From Selaginella moellendorffii (lineage: Eukaryota; Plantae; Lycopodiophyta), in NCBI RefSeq assembly GCF_000143415.4, contig NW_003314278.1:822371-886370 (forward strand): a stretch of 64,000 bases of DNA. The letters run 5' to 3'. The notes under the pieces were generated by a model. It was not told the DNA's origin. It searched no databases and was given only the letters and a program-made list of their open reading frames with translations. Numbering within the stretch: the first letter of the stretch is position 1; every line of letters begins with the position of its first letter. This document shows, one piece after another, positions 1 through 46,500 of this stretch. Both the position numbers and the translations under genes were made by a program.

Positions 1-735
1 GTCGTCCATGGCATGTCCAGCACTACCGTTGTGCCCGTTGGCAATCGCAGAGGCTGAACGAGGCATACCGAGCATACTTAAAAGAATCCGAGCTATGTTC
101 GATAAGGTGATTTGTCTTGTTGTGTTTCTTGTGTTAAATCTTTGCTCTCTATTATTGCTTAGGTGGGCCTCAAGGAGGCGGATTCGATGGTGGTGCGAGT
201 CACCGGGTGTCCTAATGGTTGTGCGAGGCCATACATGGCAGAACTTGGACTGGTCGGAGATGGAGCAAATAGTTATCAGGTAATTTTCTGTGGTGCTTTT
301 TCAATTTACACGTTTATGTCAATGGTAGATTTGGCTCGGAGGCACGGCAAACCAGACACGGTTGGCTCAAACTTTTATGGAGAAAGTAAAGATTCAGGAC
401 TTTGAAAGGGTTTTAGAGCCTCTCTTCTACCTGTGGAAAGCACGACGAACATCTGAAGAGTCTTTTGGAGATTTTACAATGAGAATGGTATTGTTAATCC
501 AAATGCCTGGTACGGTTGCTGAATGATGTTTTCGATGCAGGGATTTGATGTGCTAAAAAGTCACATCGAAACGTACAAAGGACCTCGTACTGGAAGGTCA
601 CGCATTCTTCTGGACTCTGATGTCCATGCTGCATTGGAGAAGCAGGCGGATGAGAAGGGTCTTAGCGTGCACAAACTGGCGAGTCAAGTTTTGCTGGACT
701 ACCTGAATGGAAGTCAAGACAGCGATAGCGATTGA
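1..735 (+). CDS. SIR: Ferredoxin-dependent sulfite reductase, 3' part (5'-truncated by the window); exons <1-106, 163-279, 329-487, 541-735
   Basis: Siroheme/4Fe-4S motifs [18 protein letters not shown] and [21 protein letters not shown]; IWLGG and ESFGDF exons; GT-AG introns of about 50 nt restore a single frame; C-terminal RHH-like tail. Confidence 0.95.
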
Positions 736-963
736 GGAGAGGTTCTTGTTGTTTTAGATTTCGAGATTTCTAAAAGTTTTGATGGTGTGTGTCAAGCTGC
801 AGATGAAATAAATAGGCCGCCTCCAATGAAGGTTGTTTCTTGAAATTCTGGTTGCATGACACGTACGCAAGACACTTGTCTCTATCTTATACTAGCAAGT
901 GAAGGGTCCCGAGGACAGGGGCAAGTAGGGGCATTCTTCTTTCTGTTCCTGACAAGAAACAAC

Positions 964-2211
964 ATGGAGAAATTGCAGAACCGAAGTGATTTGGAAGTGT
1001 CGGTATGTTACCACGATTTGCTTATGTTGACACATACGTCGAAACATTGGCAGGAAATAGGGGAGATTTTCTTCTTTTACCGCCCGAAGATTGACGTGGA
1101 GCATCCACATTCAGCCGGAGAGGTACAGCGTCTTTACATGGTTCTCCGCCCAGTCGCAGCCGATAACAGCCTGGAAGTGAAGCAAGATCCACATTCGGAG
1201 AATGTGAAGGAGAAGCTGGAAGAGTCCGAGGACGCTGTCGAAGGAAAGAAAGAAGCTGACGACATCCAGCGCACAGTTAACGTGAAGGGGACACCTAAAG
1301 AAGGTGACAAGGATGGCAACAGAGATGAGAAGTCTGCCGGGGAGCTACGGGGGAGATCAAGGATGATAAACCAGGGGAGCAGGGCATGCAGGTGTGTTGA
1401 CCTGACCATCTTTTATGTTATCCATGGTTCCTGATCGATCACTTCGTGCAGGAGGTGGATTTGACAAAGCGCTTGCTGATGAGACTGATAATAGTAGGAC
1501 GGAAGGTCTTGCCTGATCCCGCTGCAAAAGGTCGTCCGGCGTGGAGCTACGTGGATCTCGTCACGACTTCCATCCAAGCGATGAAAGACAGCCTTTCGGC
1601 TTGTAAGCTACATTTTCATTATTGCGTTCTCTTCTGAAACCAGATGCCAGATGAATATGACACGAAGACTCGCGGGCACCGGGTTCAGCCAGGAGCCCGT
1701 CCGGCAGGGGAAGGCGTTTACTGCATTCTAAAGCACAAGAATCACACACACCTCATATACAAGCTGGACAAACCCAAGGAGGAACACACTGCTCTGCAGG
1801 AGGAATTGAATCTCGAAAAGGAGGCCTCCTTTATTATCTCAGTGAGATTCGACTCGAAGTTCGTAGGTAGATAGATGGATGCTAAGGTTGAGTTTCTTTC
1901 AGGCAAAGAATCCTAGTGCTGGAGCACCGCCGAATGCAGGCTTGGGTAACAAGAGAAAAGCAATGTACCCCGCCAAGCTGCAAGCGCTCATGGGGTCCTA
2001 CAGGTTTGTGCCGGTCCATCCTCCAGATCTTCTTAATTACGAAGGCTGTGAGTTCATCCTCGTACCAGCATCAGATGACATTGACAAGGAGCTGGGAGTG
2101 GAGCTACAGCCCGAGGATTACGACACCAAGCTGTGCGCAGACATCGCTAAGATGGTGGATATAGAATCGGATGTTATTAGAAAACCACTGTTTCATGGTG
2201 AGTGGGCCTAG
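964..2211 (+). CDS. Conserved uncharacterised protein (At1g16770-like); exons about 964-1002, 1054-1391, 1452-1602, 1651-1841, 1903-2211; apparent 1-nt frameshift in exon 2
   Basis: Blocks GEIFFFYRPK, EVQRLYMVLRP, LMRLIIVGRKVLPDP, EYDTKTRG, ARPAGEGVY, THLIYKL and PPDLLNYEGCEFILV recalled from a plant/fungal/bacterial family of unknown function; canonical short introns. Confidence 0.8.
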
Positions 2212-2235
2212 ATACATACCATCCCGGTAATCTGA

Positions 2236-3414
2236 TCAAAGAAACTTTCTTCTCCCTTTCTCTGCGGTGAGAAATCTAGCCGGGTCGAAGGGCTTGAGAT
2301 CCACTGTCGTAGAGTGGCTTTCGACAATGAGCTCCGCTAGACTTGCACCGGTCGCCGGTGCATTCAGGATTCCCCAGCAACTGTGCCCGGTTGCCAAGTA
2401 GACACCGGCTGCGTGAGGAAGCTTTCCAATGAGAGGAACACCGTCAACCGAGAGCGGCAGGAAGCACGCCTGCTGAGCCTTGACTTGGCAGCCATCCAGC
2501 TGACTCGACACGGCCCCAGCAACTCGCTTCAGCATGTCCATCGCTTCGGCCTTGGGCTCGACGTGGTCCGCATCTGGAGGAAGTTCCACATGCTCCGACA
2601 TACCGCACACGTAGACTTCCCCGGTGGGACGTGGATACACTTCTGGATCCATGGTTTCACCCTCCCTAGAGGTGAAACTGAGGAACAAAGCGTGCGGGGA
2701 GATGTCCCGTCCCTCACGAGGCTGCAGGATAATACTGTGCGCTTTCAGCCCCGAAATGCTTGTTAAGTCGGTCACAAGCTTTAGCTTTCCACACCAGGGC
2801 CCGAGAGCAATCACCACCGTCTCCGCTTCCACAAACTTGTCATCAACCACCACCCCTGAAACCTGGGCCGTCTCGGGGTCGACTCTGATCTCTCGCACAG
2901 TACCCTTGAGGAACTCGGCTCCAAAGTCAGACTCGGCACGGGACATGACGGTCCGAGTGAAGAGCTGAGGATGGACCTGAGCTGTAGTTGCCTGGCTCCC
3001 GATGGAACTGGATTTCCTGATTGCACCATCGATCCACGATGGAAGAGAGGCGGAAGCTCCTGCACCTGCTGTCCCTGTAGGCTCTTTGACCGTGACACTC
3101 AGCGCATCCAGCCTTCTGTACCCGTAATTTGTTTCGCCACCAAGCTCGTCTGCAAGCTGCCGGTGCAGGGCAAAGCTTGCTCGCGCCAGGTTCCCGACCG
3201 GAGAACCATCGCACCAGTCGAGAGCAAGGAAGCCACCAGCCTTACCCGATGCTGCCGTAGCCACGCCACAGCTGTCCACGACCGTCACCTTGACGCCCCT
3301 CTTCCCCAGGAAGTAAGCGGTACAGGAACCGATAACGCCCGCACCGCACACCACTGCACGAGAAGTGCCACTCCCGGCGCCTGTGCTGCCGCTGGAGCAA
3401 ATCGCCGCCGCCAT
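2236..3414 (-). CDS. FAD-dependent oxidoreductase, DAO family (TDA3-like), intronless, 392 aa
   Basis: Rossmann motif VVCGAGVIG, ASGKAGGFLA, TAQVHPQ, DPEVYPRP and C-terminal ATGHSCWGILNAPATG. Confidence 0.92.
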   Translation of the reverse strand: MAAAICSSGSTGAGSGTSRAVVCGAGVIGSCTAYFLGKRGVKVTVVDSCGVATAASGKAGGFLALDWCDGSPVGNLARASFALHRQLADELGGETNYGYRRLDALSVTVKEPTGTAGAGASASLPSWIDGAIRKSSSIGSQATTAQVHPQLFTRTVMSRAESDFGAEFLKGTVREIRVDPETAQVSGVVVDDKFVEAETVVIALGPWCGKLKLVTDLTSISGLKAHSIILQPREGRDISPHALFLSFTSREGETMDPEVYPRPTGEVYVCGMSEHVELPPDADHVEPKAEAMDMLKRVAGAVSSQLDGCQVKAQQACFLPLSVDGVPLIGKLPHAAGVYLATGHSCWGILNAPATGASLAELIVESHSTTVDLKPFDPARFLTAEKGRRKFL

Positions 3415-3513
3415 CTACTGAATCGAAGTGTCTCTCGCTACCTAGGTAGTAGTTTACACGCGCCCCTGTCGCCCGTTGTGGTGGGAAAAGAATGGAGGCC
3501 TTCCGTCTCGTTG

Positions 3514-4087
3514 CTAAACAGCTGCCGACAAAAGAAAAGCTTAGGGAACGAGAAGCACCAAAAGAGGCCAGGCGCCGTCTTACTTGCACGCGCCGTTCTA
3601 ATGGGGATGTCCCTCAATTCGCGCCTGAGGCAGAGCCACTCGCCAAGGAGGGCAGTGACGGCCAAGCACGTCCCCATGAGCAACCACCACGTCACAGTTA
3701 GCGGGAATCCCCCGTAGATGGAGCTCAAGATCAAGTGAATAATGTAGACAGTGGCCGAGAAATCCAGGCACTTTTTGGCCCTCTCCACCAGCACGAACAG
3801 GTAGGCAGCTCTAAAAGGGAGAATGAGAGATTTGTTTGCGTGGATCTGGAGGGGAGGACTTACACTAGGAGCGAGTTGAGGATGAAGGCCGAGATGAGGC
3901 ACCAGCCGGTGGCGGAGGAGAAGGAGAGCAGCGTGTGGTCGAAGAAGAAGAGGAGCGTAAACTTCGGTACCTGGACTCCCACGAATGCCCACAGCAGCGC
4001 GCCAAGGCTGACATAGCTCAGGCACTGGATGCAGACGATCTGCGACACAATGAGCCACGGATCCCACACCGCTGCGCCATAGAACAT
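3514..4087 (-). CDS. SYS1: Golgi integral membrane protein SYS1; exons 4087-3864, 3810-3584, 3521-3514
   Basis: MFYGAAVWDPWLIVSQIVCIQ start; ERAKKCLDFSATVYIIH and LLGEWLCLRRELRDIP signatures; two GT-AG introns splice in frame to ...RATV*. Confidence 0.92.
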
Positions 4088-4152
4088 GGTGTGTGGGTGC
4101 GCCCTAGGCACGAGAAGCCGGGAGGGAGCCCTAAAAAAGCCCGGGCCTCGGG

Positions 4153-4883
4153 CTAGCAGTCGGCGACGCCGCGGGCGCAACAGGTGGCGAACACGAACCA
4201 TGCCGCCAGGAGCGAGGAGATGAGCGCCCAGCCGACGAGGAAGGGCCAGCCGGCGGTGAGGAGGCCGATGCAGAGGACGAGGACGAAAGGCGCGAGCGAC
4301 CTGAGGAGCGCGGCGGGGCCGATCCAGTGGCCGCGGCAGTGCACCAGGGCGACGATGTGGATCATGTTCCAGTCGGTGCGGCCCTGGTACGCGGCGCGGT
4401 TGAGGCAGGTGGAGACGAACGAGTGGCAGTTGCAGGTGAAGAAGTTGTACGTCTTGTGCTGGAACTTGTGCATGCAGCTGCGCAGGGCGTCGTCCCAGTC
4501 GCTGGCGGTGCCCAGCTGCGAGTGCCGGAACGCCTCCCGGCAGCGGTGCCCCGACAAGGCGAATGCGGGGAAGCAGCACTGCGCAGCAACCAGTGTCATG
4601 CGGTTAGCTGCAACATGTCACTACGCACCTGGTCGGGGTCGAGGCGGAGGAACTTTGCGGGCGAGCCGAAGGCGAAGCCGTCCACGTTGACGAAGAAGGG
4701 GCCGGCGAAGTCGAGGATGACACCGTCGGCGCGACAGATCCCTACGTGGCCGATGAGCGGCGACAGCCACGAGACGATGGGCAATGGCGTCCACACCACG
4801 CAGTGCGGGAAGCGCGCTCGCTCGGCATCCACCGCCGCCGCCGCATTGCCGCCCACGGTGAGCGCCACCGCATCCATGGCCAT
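4153..4883 (-). CDS. RTE1: REVERSION-TO-ETHYLENE SENSITIVITY1-like (RTE1/TMEM222, DUF778); exons 4883-4629, 4578-4153
   Basis: [31 protein letters not shown] and [12 protein letters not shown] motifs; C-terminal transmembrane segments; one 50-nt intron. Confidence 0.92.
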
Positions 4884-4908
4884 GCCTGCGCGCGACCTAA
4901 AGCGGGGC

Positions 4909-4916
4909 TAGGGTTT
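4909..4916 (+). promoter_or_regulatory. Telo-box (TAGGGTTT / AAACCCTA) in the 41-bp spacer between the RTE1 and RRP4 start codons
   Basis: Exact match to the plant telo-box, 8 nt upstream of the RRP4 ATG; telo-boxes are common at ribosome-biogenesis genes. Confidence 0.55.
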
Positions 4917-4924
4917 CGACAAGG

Positions 4925-6055
4925 ATGCGGGCGCTGGTCGCGATTGGTGATGTGATCCAGGTGGATCACCAGGACGGAATCCTGAGGTAAAAGGAGGCGG
5001 CCTCTTTCCAGCCAACCCTTCAAGCCATGCTTGTTCTTTTAGAGGGCACGGAACGCAGCTTGTAGACGGGGAGCTGGTAGCCACTGTTTGCGGCACTGTC
5101 GAGCGGGTGAACAAGCTCGTGTTTGTCAAGCCGCTTCGTTCCAGGTAGGGCGCTCTTGTATTGTAGAGAGGCGATGCATTCTTTGTCAACCTTTGCAACA
5201 CAAGGTACGAAGCACGGGTTGGAGATGTTGTCATCGGCCGAGTCACCGAGGTTGGTTGAACCGTTGGAGGGGTGATCGGCTGACTCGTACTTGTTTCCAG
5301 CTTGCCCAAAAGCGATGGAAGGTGGATGTCAACTCCAAGCAGGACGCCCATCTCATGCTGTCCGCGGTGAATTTACCAGGTGGAATCCAGGTAAATCATC
5401 CGCATTCCGCACTGCTATATGCTACATTGCGCATCTCCTGCAGAGGCGGCGGACGGCCACCGACGAGCTCAATATGCGGTCTGTGTTTGTAGAAGGTGAC
5501 CTCATCAGTGTATGTGCTAGTTTTGTCTTGTGGAAACTTATCGATGCATGCAGGCTGAGGTGCAATCTGCGAGCCAGGACTCCATCCACCTCCACACCCG
5601 GAGCTTGAAGTATGGCAAGGTAAGCAAGAAAACAATGGCTGTGTCTGGGGCTGACGTTCTATCCGGATTGGCAGCTGCAAATGGGCCAGCTTGTCAAGGT
5701 TGAGCCTTACCTCATCAAGCGCTTGAGCCAGCACTTTCACAGCTTTGGGCAGTACCAGGTGGAAGTTATCTTTGGGTGCAACGGCTACGTGTGGATATCA
5801 AGCGTTGCACAGCGTGAACAGCAGCAGCAGCAGCTGGAGGAGGATGGGGCGGCGATCCCGATTCCGCTGGCAACCAGGGAGAGGATTTGCCGGGTGGGCA
5901 ACGCTGTGAGAGCGCTGGCCTCGCAGGGGCTCGTCGTGTCTCCAGACTCGGTGGTGGCGGCGTACGAGGCGAGCGTGGGGTGGGGGATTGAGCCCAAGGA
6001 CATGCTTGCGCGGGCCTTTGGTGAAAGGCTTGTTGCGCGGGAGAATCACAAATGA
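4925..6055 (+). CDS. RRP4: Exosome complex component RRP4 (about 7 exons)
   Basis: Spliced product MRALVAIGDVIQVD..LRGHGT..VCGTVERVNKLV..YEARVGDVVIGRVTE..KRWKVDVNS..LPGGIQRRRTATDELNMR..LHTRSLKYGK..IFGCNGYVWI (S1 and KH domains). Confidence 0.93.
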
Positions 6056-6073
6056 AATAATTTAGGGCTTGCG

Positions 6074-9000
6074 ATGGCGCGGTGCCTGGCAGCGAGGGTC
6101 TCGTCCAGGCTTGTGTTGCCGAGGTTGCGCGTCGAGACTGGATCCTTCCATACGATTGTTAGACCAGCCAAAAGAGACGCGGTGCATTTTCATGGGAGCC
6201 CGCGGTGGATGCAAAGGCCGCCCGCGCCCCGCTCCGTCCCTCTCTCCCGCCTCACTGACAACTTCCTCGACGGCACCAGCAGCGTCTACTTGGAAGAGCT
6301 CCAGTGCGCGTGGGAGGCGGATCCCAGGAGCGTGGACGAGTCGTGGGACAACTTCTTCCGGAATTTCACGGGCAAGGCGGCATCCAGTCCCGGCCTGTCG
6401 GGACAGACGATCCAAGAGAGCATGCGCTTGCTGCTGCTGGTGAGAGCGTACCAGGTGAATGGTCACATGAAAGCGCAGCTGGATCCCCTGGGGCTGGAGC
6501 AGCGCGTGCCCCCGCAGGATCTCAACCCGGCTCTGTATGGATTCACGGATGCCGACCTGGACCGGGAGTTTTTCATCGGGGTGTGGAGGATGTCGGGCTT
6601 CTTGTCCGAGAATCGCCCTGTCCAGACGCTGAGGGCCATTCTCAGACGTTTAGAGCAGGCATACTGCGGGAGCATTGGCTACGAGTACATGCACATCCCG
6701 GACAGGGACAAGTGTAACTGGCTGCGGGAGAGGATCGAGCAGCACGTCCCCAGCAACTACTCGCGGGAGAAGCAGGCCATCATCCTGGATCGCCTCATCT
6801 GGGGGACGCGCTTTGAGAACTTCCTGGCGCAAAAGTGGACTGCTGCCAAGCGCTTTGGCCTCGAGGGTTGCGAGACGCTGATCCCGGGAATGAAAGAGCT
6901 CATCGACCGGGCCGCCGACCTGGGCGTGGACAGCATTGTCATTGGCATGCCTCACAGGGGTCGGCTCAACGTGCTGGGTAATGTGGTGAGGAAACCGCTG
7001 AGGCACATCTTCAGCGAGTTTAGTGCCGGGATAAGGCCCGCCGACGTCGAGAAAGGTGGCTACACCGGGAGTGGTGACGTCAAGTACCATCTGGGCACTT
7101 CCTACGACAGGCCAACGCGCAGCGGTAAGAGGATTCACCTCTCGCTCGTTGCAAACCCAAGCCACCTGGAAGCCGTGGACCCGGTTGTCATCGGAAAGAC
7201 GAGGGCCAAGCAGTACTACTCGCAAGACGTCGAGCGCAAGAGAAACATGGCCGTCTTGCTCCACGGCGACGGCAGCTTCTCGGGGCAAGGTGTGGTGTAC
7301 GAGACGCTGCACTTGAGCGACCTTCCCAACTACACAACTGGCGGTACCATTCATATCGTCGTCAACAATCAGGTGGCCTTCACCACCGACCCCAAGAGCA
7401 GTCGCTCCTCTCCTTACTGCACCGACGTTGCCAAGGCCTTGAACGCTCCCATTTTCCACGTCAATGGCGACGATGTGGAGGCCGTTGTCCACGCCTGTGC
7501 GATGGCGGCGGAGTGGAGATGCCACTTCAAGGCGGATGTCGTCGTTGACATCGTTTGCTACCGCCGGTTTGGTCACAACGAGATCGACGAGCCGAACTTC
7601 ACTCAGCCTAAAATGTATCAGGTACGTCTGCCGTATCTTGCATGCACATGTCCCTTGACGTGTGTGCGTACTCTGGCAGGTCATCAAGGGCCACCCCACT
7701 TCTCTCGACATCTACGAGAAGAAGCTGGCCCAAGTCGGGCAGCTGAAAAAGGAGGACATTGCAAGGGTGCACGACAAGGTGATGGCGATCTTGAATGAAG
7801 AGTTTCAGAGCAGCAAAGACTATATCCCAAAGACACAAGACTGGCTTGCAGCATATTGGACGGGATTCAAAAGCCCGGAGCAGCTGTCCAGGCTACGAAA
7901 CACGGGGTAAGGGTGGATTTGTGATCACACCCGCATGTGATGACCACTCCAGTGTCAAGCCGGAGATTCTGAAGAACTTTGGCAAGGCGATCACCACGCT
8001 ACCTCCAACTTTCACGCCACACAGAGCGATCAAGAAAGTATACGAGCAACGTGCGCAGATGATTGAGACGGGAGAAGGTGTTGACTGGGCGACTGCAGAA
8101 GCCTTGGCCTTTGCGACGCTGCTTGCCGAAGGCAACCACGTCCGCCTGAGCGGTCAGGACGTTGAGAGAGGCACATTCAGCCACAGACATGCTGTCATAC
8201 ACGACCAGAAGTCTGGCGAAAAGTATTGCCCTCTGAACCATGTGGTGAAGAATCAGAAGGACGAAATGTTTACAGTCAGTAACAGGTGGGCTTGTACTTC
8301 TACCTTCCGTAGGTACTGATAACATGTGGCGCATGCAGCTCACTGTCGGAGTTTGGAGTGCTTGGGTTTGAGCTTGGGTATTCGATGGAGAACCCAAACT
8401 CGTTGGTTTGTTGGGAGGCCCAGTTTGGAGATTTTTCCAACGGTTGCCAGGTGATCTTCGATCAGTTTCTGAGCAGTGGGGAAGCAAAATGGTTGCGTCA
8501 GACGGGCCTGGTCGTCCTGCTGCCACACGGTTATGACGGGCAGGGACCAGAGCACTCGAGTGCGAGGCTGGAAAGATTTCTACAGGTTTCGTAATACAAG
8601 CTTTCAATGCATCTTGGGATTGCTAAATATGACCGCAGATGAGCGATGACAATCCATTCGTCATTCCTGAGATGGAGGTGTCCCTTCGCAAACAGATTCA
8701 AGAATGCAACTGGCAGGTGGTGAACGTGACAACTCCTGCCAATTACTTCCATGTACTCCGCCGGCAGGTAAGCACTAGGTGTTATGATCGTGAGCTATAT
8801 CACTCACTCTTTTTGTTCGCCGCTTAGATTCATCGGGACTTTAGGAAACCTCTTGTCGTCATGGCGCCAAAGAATTTACTGCGCCACCAGGCGTGTCGGT
8901 CAAGTCTGTCCGAATTTAACGATGTTGAGGGACATCCTGGGTTTGATAAGCAAGGCACCCGATTCAAGCGACTGATCAAGGACCAAAACAACCATGCTGA

Positions 9001-9491
9001 GGTGGAGTCGGGGGTTCGTCGCCTCGTTCTCTGCTCTGGAAAGGTAAATTTTGCGAGGCCAGACGGTGAGACTATAGCGTGTGCTTGTCTAGGTGTACTA
9101 TGAGCTGGATGAGGAAAGGCAGCGTGTTGGTGCCAAAGACGTAGCCATTTGCCGCGTGGAGCAGCTTTGCCCGGTTCCTTACGACCTCCTCCAACGAGAA
9201 CTCAGGCGATATCCAAGTAAGCCAGCCAGTTTATCTTCTTTTTCAAACTCGGGTGTGTGCGTAGATGCGGACGTTGTTTGGTGCCAAGAGGAGCCGATGA
9301 ATATGGGTGCATTTCCCTACATGGCTCCTCGCTTGGCAACTGCCATGGTTTCCGTGGAGCATGGCAGCTTCGAGGACCTCAAGTACGTGGGAAGGCCTCC
9401 CTCTGCAGCAACTGCGACGGGGTTCGGCAGTGTGCATAGCCGTGAGCAGAAGGAGCTTGTTCAAAAGGCGCTCCAGGAAGACAGGATGTGA
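6074..9491 (+). CDS. OGDH: 2-oxoglutarate dehydrogenase E1 component, mitochondrial (about 9 exons)
   Basis: Arg/Ser-rich presequence; [28 protein letters not shown], ThDP motif [67 protein letters not shown]. Confidence 0.98.
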
Positions 9492-9555
9492 CACCAACAT
9501 TCCATTCCGTTCTGCAGATATACATTGTATCATCAAAAAATAGACTTCCCAACTT

Positions 9556-10505
9556 TCAGTAGAGGCCAAGGCGTTTGAGCTCATTGACGTGCACGGGATC
9601 TAAGCTAGGCGGTGCCTCTTCGCCATCGTTGATTGTTTGCACCACGTATTCCTGCTTGAAGTGAATTCAGCAAGTGCTATAACCTTGTTATAGATGACAA
9701 GTTACTCACTTGAGACAGCTCGCGCTTTGCAAGGACGTGGTAGTGCCGGTTGCTGATTCGTTGGCCGCAGATTATGGAAACGAAGAACCCGTACGATAGT
9801 CCCGAGAGGAGGGCCACGACAACTGAGGGAAGAAAAGCTAGATTTTGTTTCCCTTGGAGTGGCAAGCACGAACGAACCTGCAAGTGAATAAAAGCCGTAA
9901 GGATGCCGCGAGTATCCAAACATCTCCTTAAGCTCCCTCCCATACAGCAGGTACACCACCAGGCCCAGAAATGCCACAACCTGTTGCAAGGAGTGTAGGC
10001 TATCAAGCCTCGGGGCATGCATTGTCCAAAGGCTTACCAGCTGAGCAGCCAGGACGATGGCGGCGTGATCTCTCATCACCAGCAGCTGGAACTTGAGCCT
10101 CCGCCACCATCTGTCGTGTGGCACATTGGCTCGCAGGTGGAACGTCGCTCGGCATTCCGTGCAGCGTGAGAATGCGGATCCTTCCTGCACTGCACGCTCC
10201 GTTTGAGTGACGATTCAGGAATGAAAATGGTGAGCGAGGCTTCACCTTGGCGGCTCTCCAGCTATCGAGGCAAGACCTGTGGACAAACTTCTGAGTCCCT
10301 CTGCAGCGGCAAGGTGCGATTAAGTCATGGCCTGATCAAAATTTGAACGAAATGAATAATTTGTATAACCTAGATCGCGACTCGCTCGCGCTCACTCACC
10401 TGTCGAGTCTAAGCAGATCCGGCACAGCACCTGCTCGGAGCTCTGGGCGCTGCGAGAAGTTACCAGGGGCGATGTGTCAGTGGAAGAGGAGGAGGAGGCC
10501 ATCAT
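9556..10505 (-). CDS. RING-variant (C4HC3, MARCH-like) zinc-finger membrane protein, 6 exons
   Basis: CRICLDS-GHDLIAPCRCRGTQKFVHRSCLDSWR-FSRCTEC RING-v; transmembrane helices; C-terminal HVLAKREL..EYVV..ELKRLGLY*. Confidence 0.9.
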
Positions 10506-10569
10506 AAAGTATATCCTTCCCCTTTACTCTGCCCTAGAGCTAGGGCTATGGCGGGAATAGTATAGGACA

Positions 10570-11704
10570 ATGGCTACTGCTGTTGGCCTTGTCGTAAAAT
10601 CGGAGTCTGCTGCTACGGCCATGGCCAATGGAGCTCGCACTCATCCCCCTCCTCCTCCTCCACCATGCGCAGCACCAACGCCCGGAGATTCCAAGCACCA
10701 ACTTCTTCACAATCCAGGCCTGGCTGTTGAGTGGAGCGCCGAGGAGCAATCCATTCTGGACGAGAGCCTCCACACGTCAGTCCCTCTCTCCATGTATCTC
10801 CTCCTCGTAACCTCTGTCTGTGTGCTCTCCTTGCAGCTTTGGGAGTGAGGCAGGCGTGTGGAAGTACATCAAGATCGCAGCCCTTTTGTCGGACAAGAGC
10901 GTGAGGGACGTTGCTCTGCGATGCCGATGGATGGCCGTGAGTTGTTTTCTTCCTTTGTCCGGGGAGCTCACACTGACTTGTGGGGGCTTTGCAGAAGAAG
11001 GAGGTCGGCAAGAGGAGGAAGGCCGAAGAACAACACAACGCTTCCAAGAAATCCAAGGACAAGAAGGTGAGCATTTGTCTCTTTTCTTTGGCCCTCGTTG
11101 GATCGTTGGTTGGTCGTTGGGCAGGATAAGACTGTAGACGTGAAGCCATCAACAGCAGCTCTGGCCAAGACCGGCGGCAACGGCAACAGCAACAACAACA
11201 ACACCAGCACCAACACCGGCTCCATGCCCATGTACTCTACCACGCCCCTTCCTATTGATGCCGACGATGGTATTTCAAACGAAGGTTCGTCCGCTTTGCT
11301 TCACTCTCGATGCCTGACGTTGTGCTTGTTTCCCGCAGCAATCGGTGGCACCGCCGGGGAGCTGTTTGACCAAAACCTCCAAGTGGTTGTGCAGATACGA
11401 GCCAACCTGGCTGCTGGCAAGGTATGTCGCTGTTGTTTTTGACGTCCTGGTTCTTGACAAGGGCGGTGCGATGCAGGCCCAGGAGAACACGGATCTCTTG
11501 GCCAAGTTCCGGGACAACCTGGAAGCGCTCCTCGACGGGTACATAAATACATACACGCTCTGGCTTGAAAGAACTTAATCCAGCTTTTCTTTCCATGGCA
11601 GGATGTCTAATGTATCGGGGATCATGAGCCACATGCCCCCGCTCCAGATTGCAATCAACAGGGAGCTGGCGGACACCATCCTTCCCACAAAGTCGCAGCC
11701 GTGA
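10570..11704 (+). CDS. DUF3755 family SANT/Myb-like protein (about 7 exons)
   Basis: HNPGLAVEWSAEEQSILD, YIKIAALLSDKSVRDVALRCRWM, KKEVGKRRK, ENTDLLAKFRDNL, IMSHMPPLQIAINRELADTIL. Confidence 0.85.
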
Positions 11705-11796
11705 TAAAGTGGGGGGACTAGCTAGGCTTATTCTTGTACAGAGATTTTAGGAGGAGCTAGGGCTTATAGGTAGGCGTGCGCGAGGTGGGCGGCGCC

Positions 11797-12074
11797 ATGG
11801 TGCAGGCGATCAAGGGCGTCCTGGTGAGCTGGTGCGTCACACTTGCCCGCTGCTTTTTGCGCTTGATGGCCGTGGCCGTGGTGCGTGCAGCGACATACCC
11901 ATGGCGCAGTTTGTCATTCACATGAACGAGCAGCTCCCCGCGGCCCAGCAGTTTATCATCTACGTGCTGGATGACACTAACATCTTCGTGCAGCCCAATG
12001 TCGTGGACATGATCCAGAAGCGGCTTCAGGAGTTTAGGGACCAGAACACGTACGAGAAACCACTCCAGGCTTAA
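11797..12074 (+). CDS. TFB5: TFIIH subunit 5 (p8/TTD-A/TFB5), 2 exons
   Basis: MVQAIKGVLVSC|DIPMAQFVIHMN..FIIYVLDDTNIFVQP..RDQNTYEKP; one GT-AG intron. Confidence 0.95.
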
Positions 12075-12116
12075 GCACTTTTGTAACCCCCTCCTCCCCT
12101 CTTTCCCACCACCGCC

Positions 12117-14341
12117 ATGAAAGGCCTCCTGCCCGACAGCAGGAGCATTTTCCTCAACCTCGCCGCTCGGTGCTTTGTCAAGGGCCTCCCATGCAAACGC
12201 AAGCGAGCGGACCACGCTACCAGCAAGCAAGACCGGACGAGAAGGCGCACGGTTTCCCCGGCCGCGAGCAACGCTCACCCCATCAGTGAAGAGGCCGTCA
12301 GGTTGGTACTGGTGCTCTGGTTGTTCTCCACCTCCTAACTCTACTGCAGCGTTCAACTTGTGGACGACAACAAAGCCATGGTCCGGCTTGCGGCCAACCA
12401 GGTACGCAAGCAACGAGAGACGCTCCCATGATCGCTTGTGAATCTGGCAGACTCTTGCGTTTGATGGATGTGCCATGGTGTGCCTGACCGAAGGAAGTGC
12501 TTCCATGCATGGTTACTCCCTTATTCGGGCCACGGAAGTTCTTGTGAAATCTTGCTCGACGCTATGCTCGGCTTTAACATTCCAGACGAGCCAAGGCGGG
12601 TGCGTCCTCCGTTTCAGCTCCTGCAGCCTCGAGCAGCCGGATGACGACTCGCTGTCTTTTACTCTCGTAAGTTGTGTTACATAGACCGGCACACCTTAAG
12701 TCTTCTGTTTGCAGGAAATTGTCGATGACTCCCGCTCATCTTCTGACCAAAATGCTGAATCCAGGAAAAGGAAACAAATAAGCAGTGACGTTGTGGAAGG
12801 AGCTCAGAAGCGCATGCGGCCGACCATTATACCTTGCGAGTGGTCGTCCACTGCCGACTTGATAATGTCCGTATGTGACAGGCTTCCACCTGTTGTTCCA
12901 GTCTGCGGAGGGAAAGGCGTGGGAAAGTCGACTTTTGCTCGTTTCCTCGTCAACAGATTGCTGACCAGGTGGATTCTTGATTTGTCTTAGACCTGGCTCG
13001 CTCATGCTCATGCAGGTACAAAGCTGTTGCATATCTCGACGCCGACGTTGGCCAGCCAGAGTTTACAATCCCAGGATGCTTATCACTTCACGTTCTTGAA
13101 GAACCGATCACTGGCAAGGATCAGCGCTTCTGGAATCGTTCCTTTTCTCATGTTTTTCATTGCAGGCTCTCCCGTCTCACACCTACGTGTCCCGCAAAGG
13201 TTTTATGATATTTTCCGACTTTCATGTTGCGTTTCCGACCCGCATACCCGCATCTTTCAGGTGCTTCTTCTACGGTGACATAACTCCACAATCGGATCCA
13301 AAGGCATATGTCAAATACTTCAAGGATCTTTACGACTCTTTTCGACGGGCCGCTCTTGAGATTCCGCTGGTCATCAACTCGCTTGGATGGCGGGCAGGTC
13401 CAGGATTTTTCTCGCTTGTCATGTATTCTAACTTTGCGTTCCAAAGGTGTCGGATACGACCTCTTGGTTGATATACTGCGTTATTCGACGCCCACGCATG
13501 TGGTAGAGATCCACTCTGCAGACCATGAGAGTGTTCCGCCGCTGCCTGATGGCATTGCCTCCGTCCTTCATCTAGAACGCGCTTTCTCCTGCTCGACTGA
13601 GCCTGACCGGTATGCCACTCAGCTTCTTTCGCATTCACCATCATGTGGAACTAATTCTTGCCTAGTGCTGTCAGGACGGCTGCTCAGCTTAGAGCTCTCA
13701 GAGTGGTGCATTACTTCCATGATTACGATAGAATCGATTCTTCGCTTGGCCTTCGATTTGAGGAAGTTGCAAGAACACTAGCCTGCCAGGGTCCTTATCA
13801 AGTTTCAGCGGATGATCTCAACATCGTGCATCTTCATGTCCAGGTTGAGACTTCCAGACTGGTCTTCCATGTAAACTCAACTCTTGTATACGATTTGGAC
13901 AGGTCCCACTATCTCAGAAGTTGTTCGGCTTGAATGCTCAACTTGTTGGTTTGGCTACCAGCTCTCACACTGGAGAAGAGCAACCCCCATGCGTTGGTTT
14001 CGGTGAGTGGCGTTTCTTCAGCTAGCATTCGAGTGAGCTGTCCGCCTTTTTCAGGTATTGTCCGGGCTATCGATGCTGACCGGCGCATCTTGTACATTCT
14101 TACGCCATGCTCGCCAAACGTCCTCGAGGGAGTGGACACTATACTGCAAGGTCGCGTGGACGTTCCTGCTACTCTACTACAGGTTCGTTGTAGCTTCAAC
14201 AAAGAGAATGTTGTTGTATAATTAACAAACCAGGTGGAAGGATACATGTGCCCCTATCTGAGCACAAGTCAAGTAGTTGAAGGCACCGGCTCATCTATTT
14301 TACGAAGACGACTGCCCAAGAGGAAGATTTCTTTGTCATGA
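12117..14341 (+). CDS. NOL9: Polynucleotide 5'-hydroxyl kinase NOL9/Grc3 (Clp1-type P-loop), multi-exon, one GC-AG intron; start codon tentative
   Basis: Walker A VCGGKGVGKSTFARFLVN, YLDADVGQPEFTIPGCLSL, PLVINSLGW.GVGYDLL, GIVRAIDADRRILYILTP, and C-terminal PY motif ending RKISLS* at 14339-14341. Confidence 0.88.
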
Positions 14342-23713: not shown

Positions 23714-26700
23714 ATGCCAATGTCGGTGGTGGCATGGCATTGGCATTGCCTGCCAGTGGTGCCCGGCGGGAGCAGCAGGCAGTGGGTGGCGTCCACCAGG
23801 AGCAGCAAGAGCACGGTGAGAGCCGCGTCGTTGGTGGTGGTGGCGGAGGAGGGCAACAGCGCCAAGGCCCTGGCGTGTAGCGCCGAGGAAATAAGCAGAT
23901 TCGTCAAGGAGCAGCATGAGGTGCGAGGCGACATGGAGTCCCTGGGCGCCAGGTACGATATCAGCACAAAGCTGGTTGCCCGGGTGCTCCAGCAGCTCAG
24001 CGCCCACGTCCAGGCCGCTTATGCCTTCTTCCAGTGGGCGGGCACGCGCGCCACCTTCAGGCACACGAGCACCGTCTACAACCTCATGCTGCAGCTGCTG
24101 TGCCGGGACAAGCAGCTCACGCTCTCGCTCCGCCTCGTCAACCAGATGCAAGCTCAGCACGTCCCCCTCACCAAGGACACGTTTGGCAGCTTGGCCCAGA
24201 TGATGCTCGGCCGCGGTGGCGTGCAAGGTGGCGTGGAAGCTTTCATCAGGCTGGGAGCCTTGGGCTTCAAGTTCAACGCATTTGCCCACGACTGCCTGGT
24301 CAAAGTGATTCTCGAGGAGCAGCGCCTCGACATGGCCTTGGCCACCTACAAGCACCTGCTCAAGGCGGGCCTGCCGGTTGACGCGCACACGGCCACCGCC
24401 ATGGTCAAGGAGGTTTGCAAGCTGGGCAGGACGGAGCTTCTGGCGGAGCTGCTGGCGGAGCTGAGGCAAAAGGGTGTTGGCCTGTCGGAGGTGACGTGCA
24501 CGGAATGCATCCAGGCGTTTGGCAGGGCGGGCGACTTGGACGCAGCCATGGGCATGCTGGATGACATGAGGCGGGGAAACTTCTGCCAGCCGGACACGGT
24601 GGCCTTCACCGCCGCCATGCACTGGCTGTGCGAGGTGCGAAGGGTGGAGCAGGCCATGACACTGTTCGACGACATGAGGGAGACGTGCGACTGCGCCCCC
24701 GACGTTGTCGCCTACAACACCCTGATTGCTGGCTACTGCAAGGCCGGTGACGGGGACCGGGCGCTCGACATGTTTCGGCGGCTCAAGCAGGAGGGCAGCT
24801 GCAAGCCAAACGCCGTTTCCTTCGACACACTCGTCATCTTCTTGTGCAAGATGAGCAGAGCAACTGACGCGCTCGCCGTCTTCCAGGAGATGCTCGGCGC
24901 AGGTCTTAAAGCCGACGTCAACGTGTGCAACACCCTCATCCACTGTACCTGTCGGCTGGGCATGCTGCGGCAAGCCCGCCGCCTTCTCCACCACATGACA
25001 GCGCATGCCTGTGCCCGCGATGCCTTCACCTATGGCATCCTTGTCAACGCGCACTGCAGAGCAGGACAGATGCATGAGGTTGCCTCGTTCATGGAACTCG
25101 CCCGACACGACGGCTGTGCTCTCTCGGCGGTCAACTACAATTTCATCATCCAAGGCTTCATCAGGTGTGGCAGGCTAGCTGAGGCCACCCAGCTTTTCGA
25201 GAGCACTATGACCAAGGAGAGCGTCCCGGATGTCTTCACGTACAACCTGCTCATAGGTGCTCAAGGCAAGGCTGGCAACATGGACAAAGTGTGGGAGCTA
25301 CTGTCGACAATGCAACGAGCAGGCTGCCAACCGGACCACTGCACGTTCAACAGCATCCTGCACGGCATGCGGAGGGCGGCCAGGATTGACGACTTCCACA
25401 GGCTGTCGGCTGAGATGGCCAAGCACGCTGTACTCCCCACGGTGCACATGGCCAACGTTCTCGTCACTTGCCTTGCTCACGCCGGCAAGATGGAGGAGGC
25501 CTTGGATTTCCTGAGGGAATTCCCTGGCGGTGCTATTGAGGTGCCCGGCTACAACACTCTGATTGCCGCCTTGGCCAGGGCTGGCAAATTCGACGAGGCG
25601 TGCAACGTGTTTCTGGAGATGAAGGAGCTCAGTGTGGCCACGTGCGACTTGCTGCTCAGCGGCCTTGTTGACGCAGGAAGGAGCGATGACATAGAGAGGG
25701 TGATCAGCGAGGCCAGAAGCGTGGGCCTTGCGTCAGAGGACGTGATGTACAGCTCCCTCATCAGGGTTCTGTGCAAGAAAGCCGGGGGGCTTGAGGATGC
25801 CCGCAGGTACTTGCGGCTGATGCAAGGGAAGGGGCTCTGCCTCTCATCAGCTGGGCACGGTTCCTTGCTCACAGCTCTGTGCAAGTCAAAGCAGCTCGAG
25901 GAAGCCTTGACCCTTTTTCAAGAGGCGGAGCAAGGAGGAGTCGTTCTGGATGTTTTCACGTACAGCTACCTCATGGATGCTTTTGGAAAGGCAGGGAGAG
26001 CGGCCAAGGCTTTGGAGGTGTTTTATAACATGCAAAAGGCGGGTTGCATGCCCGACACCGTTGTTTACAACGTGTTGATCAGCTGCCTCGGTAAGCAGGG
26101 TAAAGTTGACGAAGCGCTAGAGCTGCTCGAGGACATGAACAGGAAAGGGATCATGCCAGATTGCCGCACCTACAACATCGTCATCGATGTTCTGAGCAGC
26201 TGCGGGAGGTATGAGAAGGCGTACAGCTTCTTCGGCATGATGAAGAGAAGGAAGCATTCTCCGGACGTGGTCACCTACAACACTCTCCTCAACGGCCTTA
26301 AAAAGCTGCGCAGGACCGACGAAGCTTGCGATCTGTTCGACGAGATGCAGGCCAACAAGTGCATGCCAGACTTGACGACCTTCGGAACGCTCATCGATAC
26401 TCTTGCCAAGGCTGGAAGAATGGAGGACGCCCTTGAGCAAAGCGCTCGACTCGTGAAGATGGGCCACGCTCCAAACTCGTACATATACAATGCCCTCATC
26501 TCCGGCTTCTGTAGGAGCGGTCAAGTGGACAAGGGGTACGAACTGTTTCAGGACATGATTGAATGCAGCTGCTTCCCCGACTCCATCACCTATACCATCT
26601 TGGTGCTTGGTTTCAGCCGGCGGGGCCACACGAGCATGGCCATGGAGCTGCTCCAGGAGATGGTGAGGGAGGGGCACACACCTGCCCTTGCCACCTATAA

Positions 26701-26845
26701 CGTGCTCATCCGGAGCTTGAGCATGGCCGGGCAAGTGGAAGACGCGTACACACTCTTCAAGGAGATGATTGCCAAAGGCTTCAACCCAGACATGCAAACG
26801 TACTCGGCGCTTCCCAACCTCAGCACTCCCAACAAAAGCGTGTAG
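23714..26845 (+). CDS. P-class pentatricopeptide repeat protein, 1043 aa, intronless, probably organelle-targeted
   Basis: Tandem 35-aa repeats (PDVVAYNTLIAGYCKAG, PDTVVYNVLISCLGKQG and others); no E/DYW tail. Confidence 0.96.
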   Translation: MPMSVVAWHWHCLPVVPGGSSRQWVASTRSSKSTVRAASLVVVAEEGNSAKALACSAEEISRFVKEQHEVRGDMESLGARYDISTKLVARVLQQLSAHVQAAYAFFQWAGTRATFRHTSTVYNLMLQLLCRDKQLTLSLRLVNQMQAQHVPLTKDTFGSLAQMMLGRGGVQGGVEAFIRLGALGFKFNAFAHDCLVKVILEEQRLDMALATYKHLLKAGLPVDAHTATAMVKEVCKLGRTELLAELLAELRQKGVGLSEVTCTECIQAFGRAGDLDAAMGMLDDMRRGNFCQPDTVAFTAAMHWLCEVRRVEQAMTLFDDMRETCDCAPDVVAYNTLIAGYCKAGDGDRALDMFRRLKQEGSCKPNAVSFDTLVIFLCKMSRATDALAVFQEMLGAGLKADVNVCNTLIHCTCRLGMLRQARRLLHHMTAHACARDAFTYGILVNAHCRAGQMHEVASFMELARHDGCALSAVNYNFIIQGFIRCGRLAEATQLFESTMTKESVPDVFTYNLLIGAQGKAGNMDKVWELLSTMQRAGCQPDHCTFNSILHGMRRAARIDDFHRLSAEMAKHAVLPTVHMANVLVTCLAHAGKMEEALDFLREFPGGAIEVPGYNTLIAALARAGKFDEACNVFLEMKELSVATCDLLLSGLVDAGRSDDIERVISEARSVGLASEDVMYSSLIRVLCKKAGGLEDARRYLRLMQGKGLCLSSAGHGSLLTALCKSKQLEEALTLFQEAEQGGVVLDVFTYSYLMDAFGKAGRAAKALEVFYNMQKAGCMPDTVVYNVLISCLGKQGKVDEALELLEDMNRKGIMPDCRTYNIVIDVLSSCGRYEKAYSFFGMMKRRKHSPDVVTYNTLLNGLKKLRRTDEACDLFDEMQANKCMPDLTTFGTLIDTLAKAGRMEDALEQSARLVKMGHAPNSYIYNALISGFCRSGQVDKGYELFQDMIECSCFPDSITYTILVLGFSRRGHTSMAMELLQEMVREGHTPALATYNVLIRSLSMAGQVEDAYTLFKEMIAKGFNPDMQTYSALPNLSTPNKSV

Positions 26846-43511: not shown

Positions 43512-46500
43512 CTAGTGTTTATTACTATTCTCATACTCCGTGACAAGCTCACGAGCATGGGTAAGATTACTAAGAGGCTCCCAAGTTGATTCACAAGTTG
43601 GGTAACCTTTCCACTTAACTAGATACTCCCGACGTTTGGCACGTTTAAGCCGCGTGAATCCAAAATAGCTTCTACTTCATATTCAGGTTCACCATCCACA
43701 ACGTCTGGCGGTGGACGAATCTCCCGTTGACATGCAACATCCATAGTGTAAGGAGCCAATAAATTGGCATGAAATACATTATGAACATTGGACATCTCCA
43801 CAGGCAGATCCAACCGATAGGATACATCACCAATGCGTTTTAGCACCTGATAGGGTCCAACATATCTCGACAAGAGCTTCCGAGACAAAGAACCCTTAAT
43901 GTTCAAGTTTCGGGAAGATAGCCACACCTGATCTCCCACTTGATAGGATACATCCCGACGATGCTGATCCTTATCACGTTGATACCTATCCTGAGCCTTG
44001 CCCATCGCCTCAGTAGCTCTAGACCAACCTTGGCGTAGCTACTCTGCATAAGTCTCAACGGCTGGGACCAACACTTCGGTCATTGGTTTTGGTACAACGA
44101 TTTGTTGAGGAACCCCATGAGCATTCCCTTGCAGCATCTCCCATGGAGAACAGCCTATAGCGCTATGAAATGTGTTGTTATAACAAATTTCTGCTATATC
44201 CAAATGCTCAACCCAGTCGCGTTGGTCCGCCGCAACATAGTACCGTAGATAATCCTCAACTTGAGCATTCACGTGTTCGGTCTGCCCATCAGTCTGAGGA
44301 TGATAAGCCGTACTAAACTTCAACTTGGTACCGAACAGCTGGAACAGTGTGCCCCAAAACTTCCCCGTAAACCTCGAATCTCTATCCGAGATCATCTCTT
44401 CAGGAAGACCACGAACTCGCACTACTTCATGGAAAAAGAGCTTTGCTGCTTGTTTCGCATTCACTGTTCCTACAGTTGGAATGAAGTGTGCAATCTTCGA
44501 CAACCGATCCACAACCACCATCAAAGTATCATGACCCTTAGACTTCGGCAAGCAAGTGACGAAATCAAGTGTCACACTCTGAAATGGCCATGCCGGTGCT
44601 GGAATGCACTGCAACTTTCCAGCCTGCTTCTCAGTTCTGCGCTTACATTGCTGGCATATAGGGCAGGAACGAACATAATCCGCTACATCACCTTCCATAC
44701 CAGACCAGAAAAATCCCTTTTTCAATGAAGCCAGAGTCTTTCGCTTCCCACCATGTCCCACTGCTGGAACATCATGATGTTCCCTCAAAAATAACTGTTG
44801 AAGATCCTTAGAGGGAAGATACAATCTTTCTTTCTTATAGAATATAAGCCCGTCTCGAACTGAGAAGTGAAGCTTTGCATTAGTGCGACTAGCAACTTTT
44901 GCTGCTTCGCTACCAGGGCTCTGCTTCAACAACCCCACACGGCATAAGATTGCCTTCGCCAATGGATCACTTCCATACGAAGCCCGGACGTCCTTCAACC
45001 AATCTGGACTGATTGCCGATATTGCCCGGAATTGAGCTTGACGACTCAACGCATCCGGAACAATATTGTCTTTACCAGGTTTATATATGATTTCAATATC
45101 ATATCTGGCAAGCTTCTCTTGCCAACGAGCCTGCTTCGGCGTAAGCTTAGGCTGCGTAGCAAAGTAGCTTAGTGTGTTACTATCCGTATAAACCTTGGTA
45201 TGTCCACCCAAGTAGTGTCTCCAGTGTTCCAGGGCCGACACTATAGCAAACATCTCTTTCTCATGCGTTGGCCATCTTTGTTGGGTTTCATCCAATTTCT
45301 TGGAATAGAATGCAACGGGACAACCATGTCGCCTTAGCGTAACACCAACCGCTTTGTCACAATCTTGCTGTAACACGGCACCAATAGCATAACCAGATGC
45401 ATCACAATGCACTTCGAAGGGTTTATCAGGATCTGGGATCCTGAGAACAGGAACTGTAGTCAAGATCTCCTTCAACCGTACAAAAGCACGCTGACAAGCT
45501 GGTGTCCAATGAAACGGAATACTACTCTTCGTCAACTCAGTCAACGGAAGAGCAATTCTTGCAAAATTGCGGACAAACTTGCGATAGTATCCCGCCAATC
45601 CGAGAAAGGAACAAACATCTGACACAGTGGTCAGGACTTCCCAGGACTTCACCGCTTCCACCTTCTTTGGATCGACCTCAATCACGCCACCACCAACTAT
45701 ATGTCTGAGAAAGTTTACGTGCAATTGACCAAAAGCGCATTTACTTTCCTTAGCATATAGTTTGTGTTCGCGCAACTTCTGAAACACCAGCTCCAAGTGT
45801 TTCAAATGATCCTCCAACGTTTCGCTGAAGACTAGAACATCGTCGATATATAGGACAACAAATGTGTCCAGATAATCTCCAAATATTCTATCCATCATAG
45901 TGTTGAACGTTGCCGGAGCATTGCATAACCCGAACGGCATGACAAGGAACTCATAAGATCTGTACCGAGTTTTAAAGGCTATCTTCTCCACATCTTGATC
46001 CACCACCCGTATCTGATGATACCTGGACCGCAAATCAAGTCGTGTAAAATACTTAGCCTTTAAGAGTTGGTCAAACAAGTCATCAATGCGAGGCAATGGA
46101 TAACTGTTTTTAACCGTGATCTTGTTGAGTGCCCGATAGTCAATACACATCCTCATGGTTCCATCCTTTTTCATAACAAAAAGGATCGGCGCTCCATAAG
46201 GTGACTTGCTTGGTCGGATATGACTTTTGTCAAGAAGCTCCGTGAGTTGCTTCTTGAGTTCAGCCATCTCCTTGATGTTCAACCGATATGGAGCTTTCGT
46301 AGGTGGTTTAGAACCCGGAATAACTTCAATCCGATGATCAACCTCACGGCTAGGTGGTAGCCCTGGTGGCAAATCCTTCGGAAAGATATCCTGATTCCAC
46401 GTCAACAACTCCAATATCTTCTTTGGTACAGGATCAACCCCGTCGCCAATTCGAATTGAGTCACCAACACCCTCAGCTTCCATCACTTGAACCCATAAGG

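Follow-up and report, generated by a model that had tools for sequence, protein, structure and literature searches.

Gene-dense genomes, such as those of nucleomorphs, microsporidia, and prasinophytes, carry untranslated regions (UTRs) and promoters inside neighboring genes. In the bicistronic genes described from green algae, the mature mRNA is exclusively bicistronic and the first open reading frame (ORF) is short (medians ~300-600 nt), poor in AUGs, and weak in its start context, so that the second ORF is reached by leaky scanning (PMC11892635); the same paper cites a CDC26_TTM3 bicistron in land plants. Read-through polycistronic transcripts are reported to be widespread in cotton, where they occur alongside start and end signals proper to each gene, as found by isoform sequencing (Iso-Seq), cap analysis of gene expression (CAGE), and PolyA-seq (PMC6797763). 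The present study concerns a junction in a 64,000-nt stretch of DNA (the window) from the lycophyte Selaginella moellendorffii, in which the gene for the exosome subunit RRP4 is followed on the same strand, after 18 nt, by a gene for the E1 component of 2-oxoglutarate dehydrogenase (OGDH). The structural and RNA data suggest that RRP4 and OGDH are probably two separate genes whose transcription units overlap on the DNA. An earlier note on this DNA had described polycistronic mRNAs as documented in green algae but as no recognized norm in vascular plants, a statement that needs softening in view of CDC26_TTM3 in land plants and the widespread read-through in cotton. For Selaginella, our searches of the literature yielded no report of nuclear genes that overlap or are polycistronic.

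The RRP4-OGDH pair resembles the green algal and CDC26_TTM3 bicistrons in having a very short spacer between two independent ORFs on the same strand, but RRP4 RNA exceeds OGDH RNA by 10-50-fold with no predominant shared mRNA, the first ORF is 813 nt long with the expected number of AUGs and an A at position -3, and the two genes are not linked in Marchantia. No RRP4 was found within 10 kb of the OGDH gene of Marchantia paleacea, which has 7 kb of upstream DNA, and the OGDH transcripts of two other plants (P0015 and P0067, at ~71% nucleotide identity) have ordinary leaders without RRP4; judged by such sequence comparisons, the linkage is not ancestral. With the cotton polycistrons (PMC6797763) the locus shares same-strand neighbors that are annotated apart, RNA over a gap that is shorter than between ordinary neighbors, and genes that each seem to keep their own level of expression. 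It differs in that the gap is only 18 nt, so that the downstream promoter must sit in the upstream coding exon. The near absence of intergenic DNA and transcripts that start or end inside neighbors are features in common with nucleomorphs, microsporidia, and prasinophytes; Selaginella, however, is a vascular plant with a genome of ~100 Mb and ordinary spliceosomal introns, and its crowding is regional.

Structures of the RRP4 and OGDH Genes

The window corresponds to S. moellendorffii v1 scaffold GL377582.1, and the locus record L010 is identical to it over 7 kb. A neighboring FAD-oxidoreductase (DAO) ORF of the window is 99% identical to S. moellendorffii SELMODRAFT_270535; exact look-ups of the OGDH and DAO ORFs gave no match. 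Direct reading gives aaa TGA at 6050-6055, the 18-nt spacer at 6056-6073, and ATG at 6074-6076; the sequence and the splice-based gene models thus confirm the earlier placement of the RRP4 stop at 6053-6055 and the OGDH start at 6074, 18 nt apart on the same strand. RefSeq already has RRP4 and OGDH as two genes with 18 nt between them in both haplotypes. The coordinates of these and other features are collected in Table 1.

The six introns of RRP4 are of the GT..AG type, 44-60 nt long, and every joint is present in 25-41 stranded reads per run. A KH_6 domain is found by Pfam in the last exon, and the RefSeq model contains S1_RRP4 and KH_6. The RefSeq products of the two haplotypes have 270 and 271 residues because of a CAG insertion polymorphism at position 5818, in a poly-Gln tract, which is present in 9/24 and 11/39 reads and fixed in the other haplotype. 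The seven OGDH introns are 46-60 nt long; four are represented by listed RNA joints, one more by the break between contig pieces, and those at 7907-7952 and 9217-9264 were placed from sequence and reading frame. Exon 1 encodes 2-oxogl_dehyd_N and E1_dh (Pfam). RefSeq protein XP_002971476.2 (1016 residues) is equal in length to the OGDH model, and its gene has the same coordinates at the locus; the product of the other haplotype is XP_002966013.2, with 1014 residues.

Translated from 6074, the protein aligns with the canonical N terminus of plant OGDH, M-A-W-F-R...A-A-R-x-A-x-R, including the invariant Arg, and its first 30 residues are Arg-rich with one acidic residue, as a mitochondrial presequence should be. 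Within the first 45 codons there are two indels between haplotypes, of 12 and 6 nt, both of which are in frame. These three observations identify ATG 6074, where the earlier note had placed a mitochondrial presequence, as the ancestral, real, and coding-constrained start of OGDH. It should be noted that the Joint Genome Institute (JGI) models EFJ27225.1 and EFJ33433.1 (971 residues) begin at Met46 (position 6209), 135 nt downstream, and have no presequence, unlike the RefSeq XP models, which begin at 6074; UniProt entries derived from the JGI models are probably truncated at the N terminus.

The other haplotype (L001, GL377571.1:2944856-2966034) is 98.3% identical to positions 3-13407 of the window. 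Over the last 200 nt of RRP4 plus the spacer, the sole difference between haplotypes is the base at 6047. The spacer is also crossed by RNA contigs from two studies, X1 record 1 and X2 record 5, the latter covering 5850-6259 with zero differences. In OGDH there are 14 non-synonymous and 18 synonymous changes between haplotypes, giving a ratio of non-synonymous to synonymous substitution rates (dN/dS) of roughly 0.3, and divergence is about three times less in exons (1.3%) than in introns (4.0%). This OGDH copy is constrained, although perhaps loosely.

Table 1. Coordinates of features at the RRP4-OGDH locus (window positions) and RNA depth in runs X23 and X24
Feature	Position	Strand	Remarks
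RTE1-like gene	4153..4883 (exons 4629-4883, 4153-4578)	-	CT..AC joint 4578/4629; divergent from RRP4
RRP4 (exosome subunit) coding sequence	4925..6055	+	7 exons, 270 residues, stop TGA 6053-6055
RRP4 exons	4925-4986, 5043-5144, 5205-5250, 5301-5390, 5444-5509, 5554-5619, 5675-6055	+	RNA splice joints
AUGs upstream of the OGDH ATG, the sole ones in the 230 nt preceding it	6002, 6052 (6002..6060)	+
AT-rich patch AAATGAAATAATTTA	6050..6064	+	93% AT, most AT-rich 15-mer of 4400-10300; last RRP4 codon, stop, and half of spacer
RRP4 mRNA 3'-end zone, estimated	6055..6130	+	Fragment-end model, lower bound 6055 imposed
Spacer AATAATTTAGGGCTTGCG	6056-6073	+	18 nt, same in both haplotypes
OGDH E1 coding sequence	6074..9491	+	8 exons, 1016 residues, stop 9489-9491, presequence ~6074-6250
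OGDH exons	6074-7621, 7680-7906, 7953-8285, 8339-8585, 8639-8767, 8828-9043, 9093-9216, 9265-9491	+
RINGv gene	9556..10505 (L010 13483-14432)	-	Converges on OGDH, stops 64 nt apart; minus-strand reads, CT..AC joints
RNA depth, RRP4 exons	4991-5778		X23/X24, about 42-70
RNA depth, last RRP4 exon	5779-5975		X23/X24, 16.5 / 31.3
RNA depth, stop, spacer, and first 33 OGDH codons	5976-6172		X23/X24, 1.0 / 3.9
RNA depth, remaining OGDH			X23/X24, 0-3

RNA at the Junction

Stranded raw reads were taken from runs X23 and X24, and k-mer depths of assembled contigs from X1 and X2, which belong to two other studies. Transcripts of plus-strand genes are represented by reads with the first mate on the minus strand, as confirmed by the GT..AG joints, and the depth of every bin was adjusted for the fraction of it that is exonic. 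In both runs the depth drops steeply near the RRP4 stop (Table 1), indicating that the bulk of RRP4 mRNA does not include OGDH. The contig depths, which are independent of the read filter, are 250.9 for the RRP4 unitig and 19-27 for the OGDH contigs in X1, and 256 and 3-9, respectively, in X2, where a unitig specific to the window haplotype at 5850-6259 is intermediate (mean 77, compared with 256 upstream of it and about 7 downstream). RRP4 RNA is thus 10-50 times more abundant than OGDH RNA, with OGDH:RRP4 ratios of about 2-10% in the four runs. A further dip in depth at 6173-6566 involves low counts and is not taken as a sign of a separate OGDH start. A crude model of fragment ends, fitted to the stranded depth per bin, locates the 3' ends of RRP4 mRNA at 6020-6130 in X24 and 5980-6060 in X23; because the mRNA must include its stop, 6055 was imposed as the lower bound of the estimated zone. 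None of the reads listed had a poly(A) tail.

Some RNA does extend over the spacer. Continuous assembled RNA runs from the spliced RRP4 exons to 6594 in X1 record 1 and is also represented by X2 record 5, but single molecules are not provable from contigs, and the same unitigs also join the RTE1-like gene on the opposite strand. As a separate observation, X1 record 1 follows the GL377571 haplotype to ~6125, and at 6457-6562 it departs from both haplotypes, with ~20 changes within 105 nt that fall almost exclusively on third codon positions; a unitig chimeric with a paralogue, a gene-conversion tract, or a different accession are possible sources.

The reasoning in the earlier note, that 18 nt is too short to hold a 3' UTR, a terminator, a promoter, and a 5' UTR, is upheld, and it follows that either the transcription units overlap or some RNA is common to both genes. 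The note had left the choice between such an overlap and a single mRNA for both proteins. The RNA data favor the overlap, since most RRP4 transcripts appear to end near the stop, and the 10-50-fold excess of RRP4 RNA rules out an obligatory shared mRNA for RRP4.

Proposed Organization of the Transcription Units

Because the start at 6074 is ancestral and constrained by coding, OGDH RNA must overlap RRP4. In the organization that we favor, RRP4 mRNA would be cleaved and polyadenylated ~0-75 nt past its stop, so that its 3' UTR would be very short and would end at or just inside the first OGDH codons, and its likely poly(A) signal would be the A/U-rich patch that covers the stop codon and part of the spacer. 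OGDH transcripts would begin upstream of 6074, at an RNA level 10-50-fold lower than that of RRP4, most likely from a TATA-less promoter within the last RRP4 exon. The OGDH leader would then consist of RRP4 coding sequence and would be translated by ordinary cap-dependent scanning past at most two tiny upstream ORFs. The last RRP4 exon contains four ATGs only, at 5681, 5844, 6002, and 6052. AUG 6002, which shares the frame of RRP4, begins a stretch of 17 codons that runs to the RRP4 stop, and AUG 6052 reads AUG AAA UAA, so that with a start site in the last 230 nt of the exon the OGDH leader would contain no more than two upstream ORFs, of 17 codons and 2 codons. Where exactly RRP4 mRNA is polyadenylated, what the AT-rich patch does, and where OGDH transcription starts are inferred.

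The second-ranked AT-rich patch of 4400-10300 is at 9528-9542, ~40 nt past the OGDH stop, and the occurrence of such patches near both stops suggests that they mark 3' ends here. The patch at 6050-6064 is likely to be the near-upstream poly(A) element (AAUAAU) of RRP4, with cleavage expected 10-35 nt beyond it, where the OGDH coding sequence is about to begin or has just begun. A role of the same patch as a TATA box was considered and rejected: transcription would start past ATG 6074, so that the RNA would have as its first AUG the out-of-frame one at 6192 and as its first in-frame AUG that of Met46, yielding a protein without the presequence. Scans of 3500-10500 for Rfam families and tRNAs were empty, so that the pair is no dicistron of the tRNA or snoRNA type.

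In plants, telo boxes are enriched in 5' UTRs, and modules of the telo box AAACCCTA and site II (TGGGCY) are characteristic of housekeeping genes (PMC3022908). The present locus has a near-miss of the former and one AGCCCA, site II in reverse orientation, at 5991-5996, 80 nt upstream. The near-miss is a single telomere unit, TTTAGGG, in the spacer at 6061-6067, 7-13 nt ahead of the OGDH ATG; the spacer segment TAGGGCTT, inside this unit, matches the telo box at 7/8 positions and so misses the canonical 8-mer by one base. The OGDH transcripts of another plant have a perfect telo box, TTAGGGTTT, 5 nt ahead of the ATG. The motif is not enriched in the window (8 found versus 8.4 expected), and neither the Marchantia nor the L009 OGDH start is preceded by it. 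The telomere unit is a weak hint that the spacer may belong to the OGDH leader.

Several points weigh against this organization. The last exon of RRP4, which is GC-rich, contains no recognizable core promoter element, and no read, contig end, or cap-based datum here marks an OGDH start. The low OGDH:RRP4 ratio of all four runs would also result if the RRP4 poly(A) site leaked at a constant rate. Reads of conserved genes may have been filtered, and the OGDH depth represents few reads per bin; the depth drop, however, falls in non-conserved sequence. Both raw-read runs are from one study. Cap-based libraries for S. moellendorffii, made by capped small RNA sequencing (csRNA-seq) and 5' global run-on sequencing (5' GRO-seq), are public (PMC10557634).

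Alternative Interpretations

A serious, although subordinate, possibility is that OGDH has no promoter and that a few percent of RRP4 transcripts skip the poly(A) site, are spliced through OGDH, and constitute its sole template, with translation by termination-reinitiation over the 18 nt. The unbroken assembled RNA from spliced RRP4 into OGDH would be expected on this basis, but overlapping transcripts also merge in contigs, as the joining of the opposite-strand RTE1-like gene in the same unitig illustrates. The small share of OGDH RNA relative to RRP4 RNA in four runs is likewise compatible with leakage, but from one run to another the ratio differs by a factor of about five. If translated from the RRP4 AUG, read-through mRNA would have a 3' UTR of 3.4 kb from which seven introns had been spliced, and it would be expected to be a classic target of plant nonsense-mediated decay, which makes it more likely that a productive OGDH mRNA is independent. 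The gap between the ORFs is short, as in algal bicistrons, whose medians are 40-183 nt (PMC11892635), and polycistrons have been reported in cotton (PMC6797763), where they coexist with promoters, as read-through could with an OGDH promoter here. However, the RRP4 mRNA has 12 AUGs before that of OGDH, compared with 12.3 +/- 3.3 in shuffled sequences, and several are in good context. Because of the 813-nt first ORF, the undepleted AUGs, and the A at -3 of the RRP4 start, leaky scanning, and thus bicistronic translation of the green algal type, is excluded, and reinitiation after an ORF of 270 codons is inefficient (discussed in PMC11892635). That S. moellendorffii produces true bicistronic mRNAs that are spliced and have a long first cistron, such that RRP4-OGDH read-through RNA is the working OGDH template at the locus and is translated by termination-reinitiation, is improbable; if true, termination-reinitiation over 18 nt would be a mechanism unlike green algal leaky scanning, in a vascular plant.

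It is unlikely that the gene is a weakly used duplicate, a minor OGDH paralogue that depends on spurious or leaky transcription while another OGDH bears the metabolic load, in which case the spacing would have no regulatory meaning. Reads anchored at the 33 nt of 8547-8579 continue into a different OGDH (20 reads in X23, versus a depth of ~3 or less for the present gene), indicating that a more highly expressed paralogue exists, and the dN/dS between haplotypes is high for OGDH; the second paralogue was not found in length-limited protein searches. Nevertheless, the gene is intact in both haplotypes (1016 and 1014 residues) with all introns spliced, the indels in the presequence are in frame, and exon divergence is about a third of that of the introns. 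It should also be recognized that a minor role is compatible with either transcription model and is no alternative to them.

Read-through or recoding of the RRP4 stop to give an RRP4-OGDH fusion protein is very improbable. The RRP4 stop and the OGDH ATG share one reading frame (6074-6053 = 21), with TGA and six sense codons between them, and the spacer holds no further stop in the common frame (the 580-residue reference includes the six spacer codons), but a shared frame has a one-in-three chance expectation, UGA-AAU is not known as a read-through context, the mitochondrial presequence would become internal, and RNA depth drops at the junction. Finally, the probability of an artefact, either a deletion in the spacer, which the earlier note had named as a refuting finding, or a wrong OGDH start such as the Met46 of the original JGI models, is negligible, since the spacer is identical in two haplotype scaffolds and in the RNA contigs of two studies, and the N terminus read from 6074 is homologous to those of other plant OGDHs and holds the presequence.

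A Crowded Neighborhood

The locus records of the two haplotypes (L010 and L001) contain 15 genes in 21-23 kb, with the coding regions of almost every pair only 6-120 nt apart, whereas at a control locus elsewhere in the genome 21 kb contain 7 genes, separated by 113-2800 nt. The tandem gaps are 42 nt (TFB5 to NOL9-like), 92 nt (DUF3755 to TFB5), 65 nt (RTE1-like to SYS1), and one of 120 nt; divergent gaps are 41, 64, and 105 nt, and convergent gaps are 6, 24, 64, 96, and 102 nt. The 18-nt spacing of RRP4 and OGDH is the extreme of this local norm.

Overlap of transcription units is general in this neighborhood. Upstream, the start codons of the divergent RTE1-like gene and RRP4 (4883 and 4925) are 41 nt apart, and one RNA unitig joins RTE1-like with spliced RRP4. 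Plus-strand RNA with a depth of ~6-8 (~20% of that of RRP4) covers 4400-4793, antisense to RTE1-like and upstream of the RRP4 ATG; it could represent a distal RRP4 start or an antisense RNA. Downstream, X2 record 9 spans the last OGDH exon to 9621, and the 3' end of OGDH overlaps or abuts the converging RINGv gene. Two other convergent pairs have stops 6 nt apart, at L010 18268/18275 (window ~14341/14348), and 24 nt apart, at window 2211/2236, so that their 3' UTRs must overlap in antisense.

Other features of the region were noted. On the minus strand, the 65 nt between the RTE1-like stop (4153-4155) and the SYS1 start (4087-4085) hold TTTAGGGCT; SYS1 is annotated in the GL377571 haplotype and missing from the GL377582 annotation. 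The spacer between the TFB5 stop (12072-12074) and the NOL9/CLP1-like start (12117) has a pyrimidine patch, and TTTAGGG is found 85 nt upstream in the TFB5 coding sequence. At 23714-26845 of the window there is an intronless ORF of 1043 residues for a P-type pentatricopeptide repeat protein with no exact match in the protein collection. From 34000 to 62000, GC content falls to 17-38% in patches, and a Ty3/gypsy-type pol ORF (RVT_1, RNase H, and integrase) is on the minus strand at 44039-46903, suggesting that the dense gene island ends at a retrotransposon-rich block.

Implications

The whole neighborhood is packed at 6-120 nt, and the evidence points to the RRP4-OGDH pair by itself being an ordinary outcome of local compaction and no operon-like unit. 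The locus, as interpreted here, would offer a clear natural example of a plant promoter and 5' leader confined to a coding exon of the preceding gene, and of a poly(A) signal superimposed on a stop codon. One stretch of DNA would have the triple duty of encoding the C terminus of RRP4, supplying its 3'-end signal, and serving as the promoter or leader of OGDH, which would constrain the evolution of both genes. Initiation at OGDH would be tied, through transcriptional interference, to transcription from the more active RRP4. Because neighboring genes here are 6-120 nt apart, S. moellendorffii may be well suited as a vascular-plant model of initiation and termination by RNA polymerase II where intergenic DNA is lacking.

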